A stretch of DNA of 64,000 bases, from positions 1,860,001 through 1,924,000 of the forward strand of contig OU015569.1 in the NCBI GenBank assembly GCA_907165135.1. The letters run 5' to 3'. Each line of letters begins with the position of its first letter. Within the stretch, counting starts at the first letter, position 1. Positions 7,657 to 53,213 of the stretch are shown piece by piece. Under the pieces are notes generated by a model. The model saw only the letters and a program-made list of their open reading frames with translations, searched no databases and was not told the origin of the DNA. Source of the DNA: Oikopleura dioica (lineage: Eukaryota; Animalia; Chordata). The translations under genes were made by a program, and so were the position numbers.

Positions 7657-8011
7657 GGGTAATGGCGGGATCGGGTCTTTATAAAGATTGGGTCTTTTTG
7701 AAAAGACTCATTCCCGCCGTCACCGCGCGGTACCGGCGGGATCGGGTCTTTGTAGAGACTTTCTCAACTTGCCAAGTACAGTTGAAACAAAAAAAAGTTT
7801 AAACTGTTCGATCAATGAGTTCCCTAGAAAATAAGCGCGAAGCGCACGCTCGCTCTGGAAATAGTTTAAAATACCATTTTCACTTATTCTAGGTTCCTCG
7901 AAAAAGACCCAATCTTTTTTTCTCGAAAATAAAAGATCCATTGCTTCAAAAAAAGACCCAGTCTTTGCGCAAAGACCCAATCTTTATAAAGACCCAATCC
8001 CGCCGTCAACC
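7657..8011. mobile_element. 355-bp MITE with 41-bp terminal inverted repeats and 8-bp target-site duplication
   Basis: Left TIR 7657-7697 matches the reverse complement of 7971-8011 at 37/41 positions. GTATTTCT flanks both sides (7649-7656 and 8012-8019). Internal GGGTCTTT/AAAGACCC sub-repeats; no coding capacity. Confidence 0.85.
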
Positions 8012-8534
8012 GTATTTCTAGCAGAGCCTTTCATTAGGCAATTTACTTCTTTAGTCTGCAAACCTCCGAAAATGGGCCAGAATAATAAGCAAGTTTGAAT
8101 TAGAAAATTTAAACTTTGTATTATGAAAACATTCAAGTTAAAAGTATAAAAGCTTGATTTATTCTATATCTTCTGTTATCTTATTCAGCTCTTTAAAAAT
8201 TCTCGAAGAGCGTTAAAATCAGCTATTATATCTAAGTAAATATTTTGGCCGGATTTGAAGGGTAGTTTTTGATTAGCTTGTGGCTTGTAAACACCTTCCA
8301 TTGTAAAGGAGCGGATTAGCGGAGCTGCAAGACCATTTTTGAAGCAACAAGGAGACTATAGGTGGCCAATTGTCCCGATTATTGCGCCGCGCTGCTTCGG
8401 AGCCCCATCTGGAGGTCGGAAATCGAGAAGGGCAAAAGTCCACAAGTCCAAAAATTACAAATCATCAACATAAACTTCTTATCAATTCGAAATTAATTGA
8501 ATTAAAAGCAAGAGACGAGAAAAAACGACGGTCG

Positions 8535-10184
8535 ATGGAGAACTTTAATGCCACTTACGAGCCGGAGCAACTTCTTCACAAATCTGGTGAGGGAGATTTT
8601 TTAGCCAAAGAGAGTCAAGTCGGATTATTTTCATCATTTTCTCTAATATTGAGCTTTCTTTCTTTCTGAACTGATTTTAAGAATCAGTTAGAAAATTCAA
8701 CAAGAAAAATGGCGCTGTTTTTTGTCTAAAGATTCTGAAATTAGTTATAAAAAACTTGTGATATAAAATAATAAATTAAATATTAGTAGGGCTGGATCTC
8801 TCCGAAAGCGGTGGCGAGATGAACCAGTTGGGAGGACACTTCGTGAACGGACGTCCACTGCCAAATCACACTCGAACCAAGGTAAACTGAACTTTTCCAA
8901 GTTGAGTCATTGACGGAATTAATTGTCAGATCGTGGAAATGGCCCGAGAAGGAACGCGTCCATGCGACATCTCGAGACGGCTGCGCGTCAGCCACGGCTG
9001 CGTCTCCAAAATACTTCAACGGTAGTTTTCCTCTACAAATTGTATTCATTTCCGTTACTCGACGCTTAGGTTCAACGAGACTGGCTCAATCCTTCCCGGT
9101 TCTATTGGCGGTTCGAAGCCGCGGGTGACTACTCCGCAGATCGTCAACAAAATCAGAAGCTACAAAAGACTCGATCCAGGTAATTTAAACAATCATAGGA
9201 ATTTTGGTTTCATGAGAGATTAGGATATTTTTGAGTCTTTTCTTTCTTTCCACTTCTACCTCACTTCCGCAATCGCACAATATACCCATCTCGTTCCCAC
9301 TGCCATGAACAAACACGATGGTTTCAATCCTATTTCTCTAAATTAAATAACTTTTTTTTCTAATCAAATTTGAATTAAGGAATGTTTGCCTGGGAAATCA
9401 GAGACCGTTTGATAGAAGACAAGGTGTGCGACGGGAATTCTGCTCCTTCTGTATCTTCCATTTCACGCATTTTGCGCAACAAAATCGGCAACATCTTCTA
9501 CTCCAGGCAGGAAGACGAAGACGAGACACCACCAGCGAAGAGTCAGCGAACTCGTAAAAGAAACCGACCGCAGCAGGACCCTTCTTTTGTTCAAGGTTCC
9601 GGCGAATTTTCGATTCATTTTTCGTAAAACTGATTTAGCAAAACAAGAAAACAAACTCTACTCTCCACCGCCGAGCGTAAATCACCTTCTTGGCGCGAGC
9701 GCTAACTCTACCGGACGTTTCATCGCTGGCAGTCCTGGAAGCTCTCTCTCCGAAACGGTGAGTTATCAATCAGATTAGAAAGAATGCAGTTAGTTTCATT
9801 TCCTTGATCTTGATGTCTAACTTGAACTATTCTTTAGTCTGGATCTTCTACTCCCGGCCAGGTCTTTCCAAAGCAAGAGCCGGATTTATCCGCTCAGATC
9901 TGTCCGATCCCTCTGGAGCACCAAACTGCGTACCCCGCTTATCACCAGCCCTTTCCTTACTACCCAATGCCTTACCAACCGCAGCACCACCACCTCAACG
10001 CGCAACATGGACACCAAAGCGCGAGTTACGAAGCAGCTCATTGCTTCGCGCAAAACCACAAGTTCTTCAATGGCCTTCCGGTAACTACCAAAAGCACGAG
10101 CGAAGAGTGTTAATCATTTTTAAGCTGAATCACTACATCAGTTTCGAGCAACAAAACGACATTATGAACAACACACAGCTCTGA
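8535..10184 (+). CDS. Pax1/9: Paired-box transcription factor Pax1/9
   Basis: Spliced paired domain [21 protein letters not shown]|[31 protein letters not shown]|[22 protein letters not shown]...DPG|[10 protein letters not shown]...[14 protein letters not shown], with Pax1/9-type residues. Octapeptide-like PSVNHLLG; no homeodomain. All modelled introns are GT-AG. Confidence 0.95.
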
Positions 10185-49015: not shown

Positions 49016-49799
49016 TTACTTCTTTCTTGGGGCAGCGTTCTTGGCAGCTTCGGCGGCGTCCGCGGCCTTCTTGACTCGGGCACCCTGGAGCTTGGCGTTG
49101 GCACGGGCCATTCGGAGAGCCTGGAAAACGGAGTGCTTCTTCTCCTCGGCGGTGATAGCTCGGGCCTAATGAACAAATCAGTGGCTTGTCATCATAAAGA
49201 TAGACTTACGGGTTCCTGGGCGGTGAAGACGTGGTCCTGTCGGATTGGGAGCTGAGGAACCTGAGTGGCGGTGGCGAGTTCTTCGGCAGAGGAGTCGCCC
49301 TTGCCGGCCTTACCAGCCTTTCGTGGGAAAACGATGAGCTAAAACAAAAGTTAGACTAGTAACTAATGAGGGTGATTCACCTTGGATCGGTACTCCTTCA
49401 GTCGAGCAACGTTGGCCTGAAGACCTTCGACGGACTTGTTTCGTCGTCGAGAGTCAATGGCGATGCCAAGCTGTCGGGCTTCTCGGACGGTGAATCCGGC
49501 TCCCTTGAGTTCGTCTTGGGTGAAACCTCGTCCAGCTCGGACTCGGATGTTGTATCGAGCAGTCTGGCATCGGACAATTGGTCGAAGAGCGCCTCCGGAC
49601 GGTCGTGGGGCAATAGCGGCGGCCTACAACAGAAATAAGTAGGTTTGAATAACTCACAGAGGGTTTTCCTTACCTTGTCCTTTCGGGCATTTTGTCGTCG
49701 CTCCTTTCGAGCGGGCTGGTTGAACCAGGTTCGGACTCTTCGCTTCCAGTCCTTATGGAAGTGGGCGTTGGCCAGAATGTTGTTCCTTTTGCCAACCAT
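49016..49799 (-). CDS. RPL13: 60S ribosomal protein L13 (eL13)
   Basis: [56 protein letters not shown] and [10 protein letters not shown]; four exons, GT-AG. Confidence 0.98.
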
Positions 49800-49946: not shown

Positions 49947-50416
49947 TTCAGGTGGAATATCGATGTCGAACCCTTTTAGGGTCAACTTCAGGGAGAACTT
50001 GTGCCTGAAAGGAAACGTTAGTTTATATTTTTTGCAAGATATCATTAAATAATATATGATTTAAGTAGACACCTCAGCAACAGTGTATAATCTTGATCAA
50101 GCAGGGGTTGTCACGCTGTTCTAGTGGTCTCTGGGAGCCAATCAAAATAACTTTGGTAGCTTCCAGAAGAGCTTGACAGAAATCCAAAAGTTCTGGAATA
50201 ACTTGAGGTGACTGACAATCCAAAAGAAATCACGAGAGCCCGAGCTTGATGTACTCATAGAATGGATTTACTATTGTCATCATAGGCGTTTACACTTGTA
50301 AATTTAAATGAAACTTACACGTTCGGATGATTCTGAAGATGACCTTTCTCTACTTCAGCGTTGACCGGGTATTCCGTCCAGGAGGGCAGCATTCGCCCTA
50401 TTACGCGGATGAGCAT
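49911..50416 (-). CDS. Putative 63-aa two-exon ORF hosting snoRNA A (may be a non-coding host)
   Basis: Removing GT-AG intron 50005-50318 gives an in-frame join: MLIRVIGRMLPSWTEYPVNAEVEKGHLQNHPNVHKFSLKLTLKGFDIDIPPEKGTNLFNPEKG, then stop. No motif recognised. Confidence 0.35.
50069..50289 (-). ncRNA. Long box C/D snoRNA A (221 nt), SNORD17-like
   Basis: Terminal stem ACGCC/GGTGT; C box ATGATGA 50283-50277; guide CAATAGTAAATCCATTCT; D' ATGA 50258-50255; D box CTGA 50077-50074. Lies inside intron 50005-50318. Confidence 0.8.
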
Positions 50417-50886
50417 TCGCCCATTTCTCAAATTTTCAAATCACATCTAAAATAGTTAAGAAATTAGTTTCTTGTCGAATGCGCCGAAGAAAACGGCTGA
50501 AATTGAAGTTCTTGGAATAAATAGATAACTGTGAACTGATAAAACAGAACGGGAGGAATGTGAAGAACACTTTTTGCGCTTTAGTACTCGAAGAATTTGA
50601 GCATTCGCGCTTACTTTGTTTGAGAAGATAGGTGCTTGCTTTCAACAGTTGTGATACAGAACGAGTGAATAAGAGGGGGTGAAAGTACAGAAGGTCGGAT
50701 CAGTCGTGAATCAAGAGGAATTAGAAACAATAAGCAAAACTACAGCTCGATCGAAATGGCGGTTTGTTCGCGGTGTAACATTGAAGAATCATTTTGTTTT
50801 GTTTTTGGGTTGCAATTGAAGTTGGGATTGAAGAAAAGAATAAATAAAAACTACCCGCGATGGAGCCACTTCTGGAGCTTTTCGCT

Positions 50887-53213
50887 TCAGAAAGCCTCGC
50901 TGAAGTTTTCGTTGTTTTCGAAGTTTGCTTGGCGAGATTCTCGCAGCGAATATGACAGTGGTGAGAACTGGTTTTCAAATGTAAAACCGTCAAATGGATT
51001 GTCTGCAAAAGAGACAGTTAGTTTCGCTATCAATTATTTAGCGTGTACCTGGACCGAGAGTTCCAACAGCGGCTTGATTGACGGAATTGGGGATTGGCGA
51101 GTTTCGGAAGGACGCCTCGATGTATTTTCCATCGGTCGGTCCGTTCTAAGACAACAAATTATAAGAATTCATCAAAATATATTTCTTGGGGCGATGAATT
51201 CGCCTCAGAGGTATCGCTTGTGTTGGATTCTAATCTTGTGCGCTTGCGAGCCTCACCCGCTCACGCCCTCTCAGATATCCGTTCTTTTACACGATCATCA
51301 CCGACGATTTTAATTGTTTACGCTTGAATTATACTTGACTCACCAAATTAGGGATGAAGGGAGGGGGAATTTTCTTGGCCAGTAGCTTATCCCAAGCTAC
51401 GTCTCGGAAGAACTTGTGGCATTTGATTTCTTCCCAGTCCGACTCTCCGTGACCGAGACGCTCTTTTGGATTTTTCTGTAGGACGTGCTGCAGGAAGTCG
51501 CGCATTTCTGACCTGAAAGATAGTTTAATGATCTGTCTTTATCGTTTAATTGTAAACTTACGAGACAGAGGTTGGCAACTTGAGAGGTTTGTAAAGTATT
51601 CCTCTGTACATTTCATCAACGACACGTGAGTAGAATGGAGGCAGGCCATATACCATCTCGTAAGTGACTGCTCCAAGGCACCACCAGTCGATAGACCTGG
51701 TGTACGGTTGCTTCTTTAGTACTTCTGGAGCCAGATACTGAAGATTAACGTTATAGGCGAAATAAAGTTCTTTATAACTATTAGTTTGAAGTTATGTCCT
51801 CAGAAACGTATAATAATCCTGACCTGTCATGTGGCGATTCCTCCGCTAGAGCTCTTTTGGATCAATCGGAAATAACTTCCGACCGGTCTAAAGAGAAAGA
51901 ACCAGAGAGAAATGCTTCCTTCCGGAGAAGTCAAAGCTTGACCCAATGGCTGACAAAAGCGTTAGATAATCGCCAGGGATGATTGGTACTCAGAGAATGG
52001 ATTTACTATTGTCGTCATTGACATTTATCAGCTGTACGAAAATATAAGCAAAAAGATTTACCTCCGGCGTGCCGCAGAAGGTATCCGTTGTTGTGCCCGC
52101 TTTCATGTTGTCTTTACAGAGGCCAAAGTCAGTGAGTTTCACGTGTCCGTCCGAGTTAAGAAGGATGTTCTCTGGCTTGAGGTCGCGGTAGATCAGCTGT
52201 CTCTCGTGCATGTAGCCGATCGCGGAGCCTATTTCGGCGGAGTAAAACTTGGCTCTCGATTCTGGAAAGGTCCTGTCGCGTTGGAGGTGGAAAAAGAGCT
52301 CTCCGCTAAAATTCTGATTGAGAATTGGCGAGGTGAGTAATCGCGTGGGCGGCGCAATATTGCGCGCGCTGGAGGAATGATAACTTACCCGTTAACGTAA
52401 TCCAGGACAAAATAGAGCTTGTCCACAGTCTGGAAGGAGTATTTCAGGGAGACGAGGAAGGGGTGCTTTAGGTTGTCGATGAGCACGCGTCGTTCGCAGT
52501 TGATATGGTCGGTTTCATTCTTCTGAAGGATCTTCTTTTTCTCAAGCGTCTTGATAGCGTAGTACTTGTTTGATTGCCCGTTCATCGTCGCCAAATAAAC
52601 GCGACCGAAAGAACCTTTTCCGATCTGCATTATGTATGTGAAATCCCTAATGAAAAGTTCAGGACATAGCACCGACGGCTTGTACTTACGTTGGCGTTAG
52701 ATGACGTGATTCTGTAACTCCGAGACTGATGTCGCCGATGTGCTCGCTGGAGATGGAATACTCGCTCTTAGAAGAAGGAAGTCTCCCGTTGAGTCCTTTT
52801 GGGCCATAGAGAAACTTAGGAACGCTTTCGTGCTGCATGAAATGTCTGTTTCCGACGACCTGTTTCATCATTCGATCCAAAGTGTCCAGCCTTAATCATT
52901 TGTCTAGGAGTTGTTACTCAGGCGTTGAATTTACCTGTGAACGTAAAATTTCTTGTTGAGCTTCTGAAAAATGGCCTTTGCGCCTCTGACGGGGAGTTCG
53001 AGCTTGTCAGAGGAGACCTCTTTGTTGAGTAGCTTGCCGAGATGAATAAACTCGTTGAAGGAGCGCTGCGTGACCGACTTGTTGTTGGAGGCATCGGTGT
53101 ACGTAACCTGGGATTTCTTTCTAGCTCCCAAAGGCTTTTTGTGTACCTACCAAGTACTCGTCTGAGCTGGTTCCGTTCGGGTCGGTGACGACGCTCACCG
53201 TCGCGACAGACAT
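50887..53213 (-). CDS. SGK: PX-domain serum/glucocorticoid-regulated kinase (SGK3-like)
   Basis: PX-like N-terminus ([10 protein letters not shown]...LP); [70 protein letters not shown]|YLAPEVL; hydrophobic motif FDGFTF. Confidence 0.92.
51200..51307 (-). ncRNA. Box C/D guide RNA C (108 nt), predicted to guide U2 snRNA Cm40
   Basis: Stem TCGTC/GGCGA; C box GTGATGA 51301-51295; D' CTGA 51274-51271; D CTGA 51208-51205. The D' guide AAGAACGGATAT is complementary to U2 positions 36-47. Lies inside SGK intron 51146-51343. Confidence 0.8.
51794..52024 (-). ncRNA. Long box C/D snoRNA B (231 nt), paralogue of snoRNA A
   Basis: Stem ATGTC/GACAT; C box variant ATGACGA 52018-52012; the same 18-nt guide CAATAGTAAATCCATTCT; D' CTGA; D box CTGA 51803-51800. 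Lies inside SGK intron 51738-52061. Confidence 0.78.

Follow-up and report, generated by a model that had tools for sequence, protein, structure and literature searches.

A pair of long intronic box C/D snoRNA candidates in Oikopleura dioica predicted to target helix 71 of 28S rRNA

A 64,000-nucleotide (nt) stretch of the genome of the larvacean Oikopleura dioica (assembly GCA_907165135.1, contig OU015569.1, positions 1,860,001 to 1,924,000; hereafter called the window) carries two minus-strand segments, termed copy A and copy B, that we are confident represent real box C/D small nucleolar RNAs (snoRNAs). Their sequence features suggest that they are paralogous, intron-encoded and previously unannotated members of a known RNA class. 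The kind of gene is fairly ordinary, and standard annotation misses both copies. We further believe that these RNAs probably guide 2'-O-methylation of uridine U2550 in 28S ribosomal RNA (rRNA), which appears to correspond to the nucleotide targeted by the vertebrate snoRNA SNORD17. The explanation as a whole, in which intronic C/D snoRNAs pair with helix 71 of the large-subunit (LSU) rRNA and would methylate U2550, is the best we can offer, and we judge it likely.

The two RNA genes and their predicted target

Copies A and B lie 1.7 kb apart and have in common a 41-nt head, ATGA[T/C]GA-CAATAGTAAATCCATTCT-[A/C]TGA-GTAC (which can also be written ATGA[T/C]GACAATAGTAAATCCATTCT[A/C]TGAGTAC), and they can be aligned end to end with a mean column identity of ~76%. 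A script that requires a C box with CUGA downstream of it, and flanks able to pair (the terminal stem), recovered exactly the two segments, of 221 and 231 nt, that had been proposed in the original prediction (Table 1). Each copy is laid out as one strand of a 5-bp stem, the C box, an 18-nt antisense element, the D' box, an internal domain, the sequence A[A/G]GAUUA, a 10-nt spacer, the D box and the second stem strand, which bears out the earlier description of a C box, guide, D' box, internal hairpin region, terminal CTGA and closing stem in both. The internal domains form closed multi-hairpin folds whose end nucleotides pair beside the D' box and AGAUUA. When stability is judged against dinucleotide shuffles, these domains give stronger z scores (Table 1) than the whole RNAs, for which the values are -1.7 and -2.7.

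Genome-wide searches were made in the same 64-Mb O. dioica genome from which the window comes. The complement of the guide 20-mer has only two positions in this genome, those of copies A and B, and a BLAST search with copy A returned only the self-match. Among 19 further matches to AATCCATTCNNTGA, no C box was present at guide distance in the eight loci inspected, and in the remaining 11 the tetranucleotide is less D-box-like than in those eight. Judging from these searches, the family is limited to two members. Elsewhere in the genome, a ~100-nt intron-like stretch (L007:290-400, in G000:C2:7994000-7994700) carries CAATAGT, a 14-nt insert and then the 16-mer AATCCATTCTATGAGT, which matches the guide and D' box of copy A and has a chance expectation of 0.03 in the genome. 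A D box and a terminal stem were not found at this locus, and its remainder could not be aligned with the copies. Either a decayed copy or coincidence could explain this stretch.

The predicted target was sought in a ribosomal DNA (rDNA) unit taken from the same genome, with the bounds of the 18S, 5.8S and 28S genes set using Rfam. The native 28S rRNA carries GAAUGGAUUAAC, found in the rDNA repeats, and reads ...GCGCAUGAAUGGAUUAACGAGAUUCC... around the target; the rDNA repeats listed all carry GAATGGATTAAC. As anticipated from the LSU rRNA sequence on which the original prediction relied, 11 of 12 guide positions pair: nine contiguous Watson-Crick pairs with 28S positions 2547-2555 (guide positions 2-10 from the D' box) are followed by an A:A mismatch and two additional pairs. 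The guide ends one nucleotide before the D' box, and thus U2550, whose context is GCAUGAAU followed directly by GGAUUAACGAG, lies opposite the fifth position upstream of this box. Throughout the rDNA unit, including its spacers, the guide matches this site best, and no other genome locus was found with a C/D-like guide in this register. The rDNA itself is a tandem array with a period of 8.7 kb located near the start of contig 1.

The identity of this uridine is of particular importance. The site assigned to SNORD17 in human 28S rRNA is U3797 (U3818 by more recent numbering), located in helix 71 at bridge B3 and reported to be 2'-O-methylpseudouridine (Psi-m). The corresponding targets are 28S U3307 for GGgCD50, the chicken homologue of the human RNA (also called HBI-43), and 28S U3474 in mouse, where deletion of Snord17 reduces methylation at the predicted 28S site. 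Known methylation sites near chicken U3307 are found at -33 (A, guided by U15/snR13), +12 (A, U79) and +23 (C, U74/snR64), and the SNORD10 site C3808 is at -10 from human U3818. Counted from U2550 in Oikopleura 28S rRNA, positions -33, -10, +12 and +23 hold A, C, A and C. Given these matching offsets within a conserved, gap-free region, U2550 can be inferred to be the homologue of human U3797/U3818 and chicken U3307, which agrees with the equivalence originally derived from the rule that places the target five positions from the D' box. The modest pairing score becomes more credible because the site is a known target of SNORD17.

If this prediction is correct, the two paralogous RNAs would each span ~210-220 nt, C box to D box. 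Once the host intron has been spliced out, Snu13, Nop56, Nop58 and fibrillarin would assemble on the C/D kink-turn and the short terminal stem, and exonucleases would then trim the intron flanks, as is usual for snoRNAs encoded in introns. The 18-nt element that separates the C box from the D' box would pair with helix 71, a pairing evident from the sequences, and fibrillarin would be expected to 2'-O-methylate U2550. The 140-210 nt that separate the D' box from the C' box would fold into its closed multi-hairpin domain, bringing the D' box beside a degenerate C' box.

Only one of the two possible guide positions appears to be functional. The spacer between the C' and D boxes is 10-12 nt long and differs between copies and among the related lineages described below. 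These 3' spacers have at most 7-8 nt of complementarity to rRNA, at unrelated places, and no target common to the lineages was found. When 20 nt upstream of the D box are considered as the 3' guide, the best rRNA matches are at 18S positions 594 and 597, and 35-49% of shuffled sequences do equally well. The spacer therefore probably guides nothing, and the earlier suggestion that diverged 3' guides hint at subfunctionalisation of the two copies is unsupported. Near position ~600, the native 18S rRNA (L002, G000:C1:96000-105500) reads GCGUAUACUAAAG, and the 18S rRNA of most eukaryotes has GCGUAUAUUAAAG at that place.

Table 1. Positions of the two RNA genes, their parts, their introns, their counterparts in relatives and neighbouring features. 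Coordinates are those of the window unless a relative's contig is named.
Feature	Location	Strand	Remark
Copy A, long box C/D snoRNA gene	50069..50289	-	221 nt including terminal stem
Copy A C box AUGAUGA	50277..50283	-	
Copy A 5' antisense element	50259..50276	-	same as that of copy B
Copy A D' box AUGA	50255..50258	-	degenerate; same variant in second lineage X copy
Copy A internal structured domain	50095..50254	-	160 nt, closed by AUCAAGC/GCUUGAU; minimum free energy -46.0 kcal/mol, z -2.9
Copy A C'-like box AAGAUUA	50088..50094	-	
Copy A D box CUGA	50074..50077	-	69 nt before AG at 50005
Presumed host intron, copy A	50005..50318	-	~314 nt, GTAAGT ... polypyrimidine-AG; splice sites predicted from sequence
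Copy B, long box C/D snoRNA gene	51794..52024	-	231 nt including terminal stem
Copy B C box AUGACGA	52012..52018	-	AUGAUGA in lineage X orthologue
Copy B 5' antisense element CAAUAGUAAAUCCAUUCU	51994..52011	-	pairs with 28S 2547-2555 and 2557-2558
Copy B D' box CUGA	51990..51993	-	
Copy B internal structured domain	51821..51989	-	169 nt; minimum free energy -55.8 kcal/mol, z -3.3
Copy B C'-like box AGGAUUA	51814..51820	-	
Copy B D box CUGA	51800..51803	-	62 nt before 3' splice site at 51738
Host intron, copy B	51738..52061	-	324 nt, GT..AG; SGK3-like AGC kinase gene
Copy in lineage X	L024:1172-1199		
Copies in lineage Y	L025:6109-6392, 7804-8080, 9683-9958		
Copy in lineage Z	L027:5311-5513		
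RPL13 (eL13) gene	49016-49799	-	small introns; just downstream of copy A
Third box C/D snoRNA	51198-51309	-	other intron of the kinase gene; also L025:5668-5915 (Y), L027:6089-6181 (Z)

Conservation and relocation among larvaceans

Relatives were sought among marine-metagenome contigs (Tara Oceans, other assemblies from ENA, JGI and one Logan assembly) by word searches with exon-sized open reading frames (ORFs) of RPL13 and the kinase gene that hosts copy B. The exons were queried singly, by reference, rather than as a joined spliced model. Two contigs (L011/L012) belong to the same lineage as the window, are ~96% identical to it in nucleotide sequence throughout (96-97% over the counterpart of copy A) and are uninformative on constraint. 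Three additional lineages are more diverged: X (L022-24), Y (L025/26) and Z (L027-31), in which the amino acid identity of the kinase exon is 98%, 83% and 82-83%, respectively. The gene order of a CAF1B-like WD40 gene, the SGK-like kinase gene and RPL13 is kept in several of the relatives' contigs.

As the original prediction would have it, boxes and guide are conserved beyond the window. The RNA is present in all three diverged lineages: X has at least two copies, Y has three (Y1 to Y3) and Z has one, and the copies in X (L024) and Z (L027) that occupy the same kinase intron are orthologues of copy B. An alignment of eight copies has a mean column identity of only 60%, and the span from the C box to the D box varies between 190 and 262 nt. 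Invariant among all eight are the C box, the guide AGUAAAUCCAUUCU, the sequence NUGA, GAUUA and the D box. The pattern kept by seven further copies, in syntenic contigs of the three diverged lineages, is UGAUGACAA(N1-2)AGUAAAUCCAUUCU-NUGA, AGAUUA and CUGA, with a C box that reads [A/G]UGAUGA. A scan of JGI metagenomes for the combined pattern of C box, guide and D' box gave no matches.

The element A[A/G]GAUUA is found in 8/8 copies at 10-12 nt upstream of the D box. We read AGAUUA as a degenerate C' box because the same hexamer stands at the expected C' position of a third box C/D snoRNA, which the kinase gene carries in a different intron (Table 1), and aligns there with UGAUUA of the Rfam snoZ118 model. 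Its action as a C' box in the long RNAs is correspondingly a prediction by analogy. A different candidate for this box, RUGACAR, was dropped, given that it reads GAGACAA in L011 and is absent in Z, while AGAUUA is invariant.

The terminal stems are formed by four unrelated paired sequences: ACGCC/GGTGT in copy A and ATGTC/GACAT in copy B, with 5 bp each, and AAATCA(C)/(G)TGATTT and TTATCA/TGATAA among the relatives. Stems in Y1-3 and Z have 6-7 bp. A stem of at least 5 bp is present in six of seven copies, compared with 9.5% of random flanks from the same loci (null P of 0.095 for each copy). The second copy of X has the 5' stem strand AATCAC, as do Y2 and Y3. When the window is aligned with lineage X, the alignment stops at the end of the exon and resumes at 52021, the last base of the 5' stem strand and three bases inside the end of copy B at 52024. 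The 5' intron flank between these points (35 nt in the window versus ~180 nt in X) cannot be aligned. Blocks of the internal domain of copy B are conserved with lineage X, and an 11-mer hairpin motif, CAGGTCTTCTG, is common to the internal domains of Y and Z. Other internal k-mers common to lineages are not above the level of shuffles. A plus-strand ORF (51794-51982), which runs antisense to copy B, is interrupted by stops in the lineage X orthologue and, as had been suspected from the outset, is spurious.

Across the four lineages, homologous copies are spread over six different introns or intron-like intervals. The kinase intron at GTPE/YLAPE holds copy B and its counterparts in X and Z, the next kinase intron holds the second copy of X and the last kinase intron holds Y1, with Y2 in RPL13 intron 1, copy A upstream of RPL13 and Y3 downstream of it. 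Several corresponding introns that lack the RNA are ~40-50 nt long. With one to three copies per lineage, this distribution suggests that the gene has repeatedly been duplicated locally, relocated and lost. Throughout, the distance from the D box to the 3' splice site stays within 61-87 nt (62 for copy B, 69 for copy A, 61 for X, 83 for Y1, 72 for Y2, 81 for Y3 and 87 for Z; for copy A, Y3 and Z, the splice sites are predictions from sequence), while the 5' intron flanks vary from ~0 to ~180 nt. Such a distance from the D box is reportedly a positional optimum for splicing-dependent assembly of C/D small nucleolar ribonucleoproteins, a finding said to be that of Hirose and Steitz from 2001. 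The observed distances fit this optimum, and we take them as strong indirect evidence for processing of the RNAs out of these introns. The system would represent a natural experiment in snoRNA mobility, wherein the intron changes and the distance to the 3' splice site is kept, among genes whose other introns are ~40-55 nt long.

Given that different introns are occupied in different lineages and that the ends are short inverted repeats, one could propose that these elements are not snoRNAs at all, but some other conserved intronic element such as a regulator of splicing or a small mobile element bounded by short terminal inverted repeats. This seems to us highly improbable. The 64-Mb genome has just two copies, lineages differ in the sequence of the inverted ends, and a constant distance to the 3' splice site is kept. 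Furthermore, the conserved parts are the C, D', putative C' and D boxes and the rRNA-complementary guide rather than the ends.

Several observations weigh against the assignment of these RNAs as guides for U2550. The C box of copy B is AUGACGA rather than AUGAUGA, and the lineage X orthologue of copy B is without a terminal stem. The duplex with 28S rRNA has only nine contiguous base pairs, and 7% of shuffled guides reach an equal score somewhere in the rRNAs. Its A:A mismatch is kept in every copy, and the conserved sequence CAAU(N)AG located 5' of the paired part has no explanation in 28S pairing. The guide and/or the internal domain of an otherwise genuine box C/D snoRNA might thus act on another RNA or serve as a folding chaperone, with no methylation of U2550. 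This possibility would accommodate the short duplex, the invariant mismatch and the invariant unpaired sequence, as well as a second nine-pair match (one of them G:U) at 28S:798 that uses the GUAAA part of the guide. There is precedent for such activity, as a preprint describes many non-canonical chimeras formed by human SNORD17 through its internal sequence, and the same work mentions an earlier report of a role for SNORD17 in pre-rRNA processing. However, the U2550 duplex is in the canonical register and is unsurpassed in the rDNA unit, and the site is an experimentally supported target of an architecturally similar vertebrate snoRNA. In addition, genome complements to the 20-nt guide occur at the level of chance (5 + 2 matches, versus 6 + 2 for a control pattern). 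For the internal domain, extra duplex energies with the 28S rRNA around the target are not better than those of shuffles. We therefore regard a role other than methylation of U2550 as unlikely, and we continue to favour guidance of this modification as the probable function of both copies.

Host introns and neighbouring genes

The original prediction placed each RNA inside a GT-AG intron of 221 or 231 nt. The intronic location holds, with the splice sites for copy A predicted from sequence, but these lengths are those of the RNAs, and the introns measure ~314 and 324 nt. The intron with copy B interrupts the activation-loop motif of the kinase, between ...FCGTPE and YLAPEVL. This host encodes an AGC kinase with a weak PX match and is hence called SGK3-like. 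The intron with copy A lies ~200 nt upstream of the RPL13 start codon (49799), and Pfam gave no match for the short ORFs that flank copy A. Candidates for the host of copy A are a non-coding leader, a tiny upstream gene and the outron of the RPL13 unit. Metatranscriptome-derived RPL13 products begin right after the AG at ~49823, as would fit a trans-splice acceptor.

The third snoRNA carries a D' guide that reads ...AAGAACGGAUAU-CUGA and has only weak Rfam matches (snoZ118, E=2; ceN89, E=7.7; and, for the L027 counterpart, also snoR44_J54, E=5). It is kept in lineages Y and Z. This RNA is 108 nt long in the window and ~245 nt in lineage Y, where it has a large insert between box D' and box C'. 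In the 3' end of the kinase gene, a match to the enterobacterial small RNA STnc550 of Rfam at 50876-50974 on the plus strand (E 0.0086; 23 bits against a 48-bit cut-off) was set aside as a false positive because it is unstructured and leaves out most of the model.

Relation to SNORD17 and to short C/D guides

The comparison with SNORD17 (HBI-43 in human and MBI-43 in mouse; Rfam RF00567) rests on the Rfam model and on published descriptions of the vertebrate RNAs. The resemblance asserted in the original prediction stands with respect to the target, the 5' guide, the length and the intronic location. In contrast, scans with the RF00567 covariance model found nothing in the window region, in the L024, L025 and L027 loci or in the whole genome, whether at the gathering threshold (45 bits) or at E<=10, and Rfam as a whole gave no match to either copy over the window region and these loci. 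Because the model scores nothing, we describe the resemblance as functional and architectural, with homology being plausible.

The lack of a model match would be expected if the larvacean RNAs are not homologous to SNORD17 at all, either because they originated independently or because a short guide was lengthened separately in larvaceans. This explanation also gains from the different hosts (an SGK3-like kinase gene and the RPL13 region, versus SNX5 and DKC1), from the variable length of the larvacean RNAs and from internal k-mers that, one 11-mer excepted, are shared between lineages only at the level of shuffles. Moreover, the unrelated neighbouring snoRNA has been lengthened in lineage Y as well, and thus a long insert between box D' and box C' might be a larvacean habit. 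This tempers any argument from size, and length (190-262 nt here versus ~240-270 nt for SNORD17) is accordingly a weak character. On the other side are the same target nucleotide, the use of the 5' (D') element, the unusual size and the existence of multiple intronic copies with changing hosts, as in chicken. Homology searches are also known to miss most O. dioica snoRNAs. We consider the case for non-homology to be evenly balanced, and we give orthology with vertebrate SNORD17 a chance that is at best even and perhaps slightly lower. Functional equivalence to SNORD17 is more likely than orthology.

If orthology is true, the long internal domain would date back at least to the ancestor of tunicates and vertebrates; what it does in vertebrates is a matter of debate. 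An extended version of this idea, which we put forward tentatively and with some doubt, is that SNORD17 is an ancient long snoRNA of that ancestor and that the fast-evolving larvaceans kept the helix 71 guide and the large internal domain while repeatedly duplicating the gene and relocating it among the introns of one small neighbourhood. Were this true, the internal domain would have a conserved second function, and larvaceans would offer a compact system in which to dissect it.

Our literature search yielded no paper linking SNORD17 to tunicates. A homology-based survey has concluded that there was massive loss of snoRNA families in O. dioica, and this survey probably missed copies A and B because of their divergence. 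At least one family regarded as lost, or a functional equivalent of it, would then be present but too diverged for Rfam, and the apparent loss of snoRNAs would therefore be in part an artefact of detection. Our findings also predict that methylation of the helix 71 uridine at bridge B3 has been kept in a highly reduced chordate genome.

Like SNORD17, the RNAs described here are unusually long, intronic box C/D RNAs (SNORD17 is 238 nt long in mouse and in the Rfam model, and 269 nt in chicken). Both have a 5' antisense element upstream of the D' box, listed as "12 nt (5')" for chicken GGgCD50 and with 11 of 12 nt paired in O. dioica, and the helix 71 uridine of GAAUGG is the target of SNORD17 and the predicted target of the larvacean RNAs. 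Both also occur as several intronic copies without a fixed host: chicken has two copies in different introns, and the vertebrate host is SNX5 in human and mouse but DKC1 in chicken. The larvacean RNAs are unlike SNORD17 in being hosted by an SGK3-like kinase gene and the neighbourhood of RPL13, and in pairing through nine contiguous base pairs plus a conserved mismatch. With canonical short C/D guides, such as the neighbouring RNA at 51198-51309, they share the C, D' and D boxes, a putative C' box, the terminal stem, the same AGAUUA, a guide that ends one nucleotide before the D' box and a location 60-90 nt from the 3' splice site. However, the D' and C' boxes of the short guides are separated by a few to a few tens of nucleotides, whereas in the long larvacean RNAs this interval is 138-210 nt and structured.

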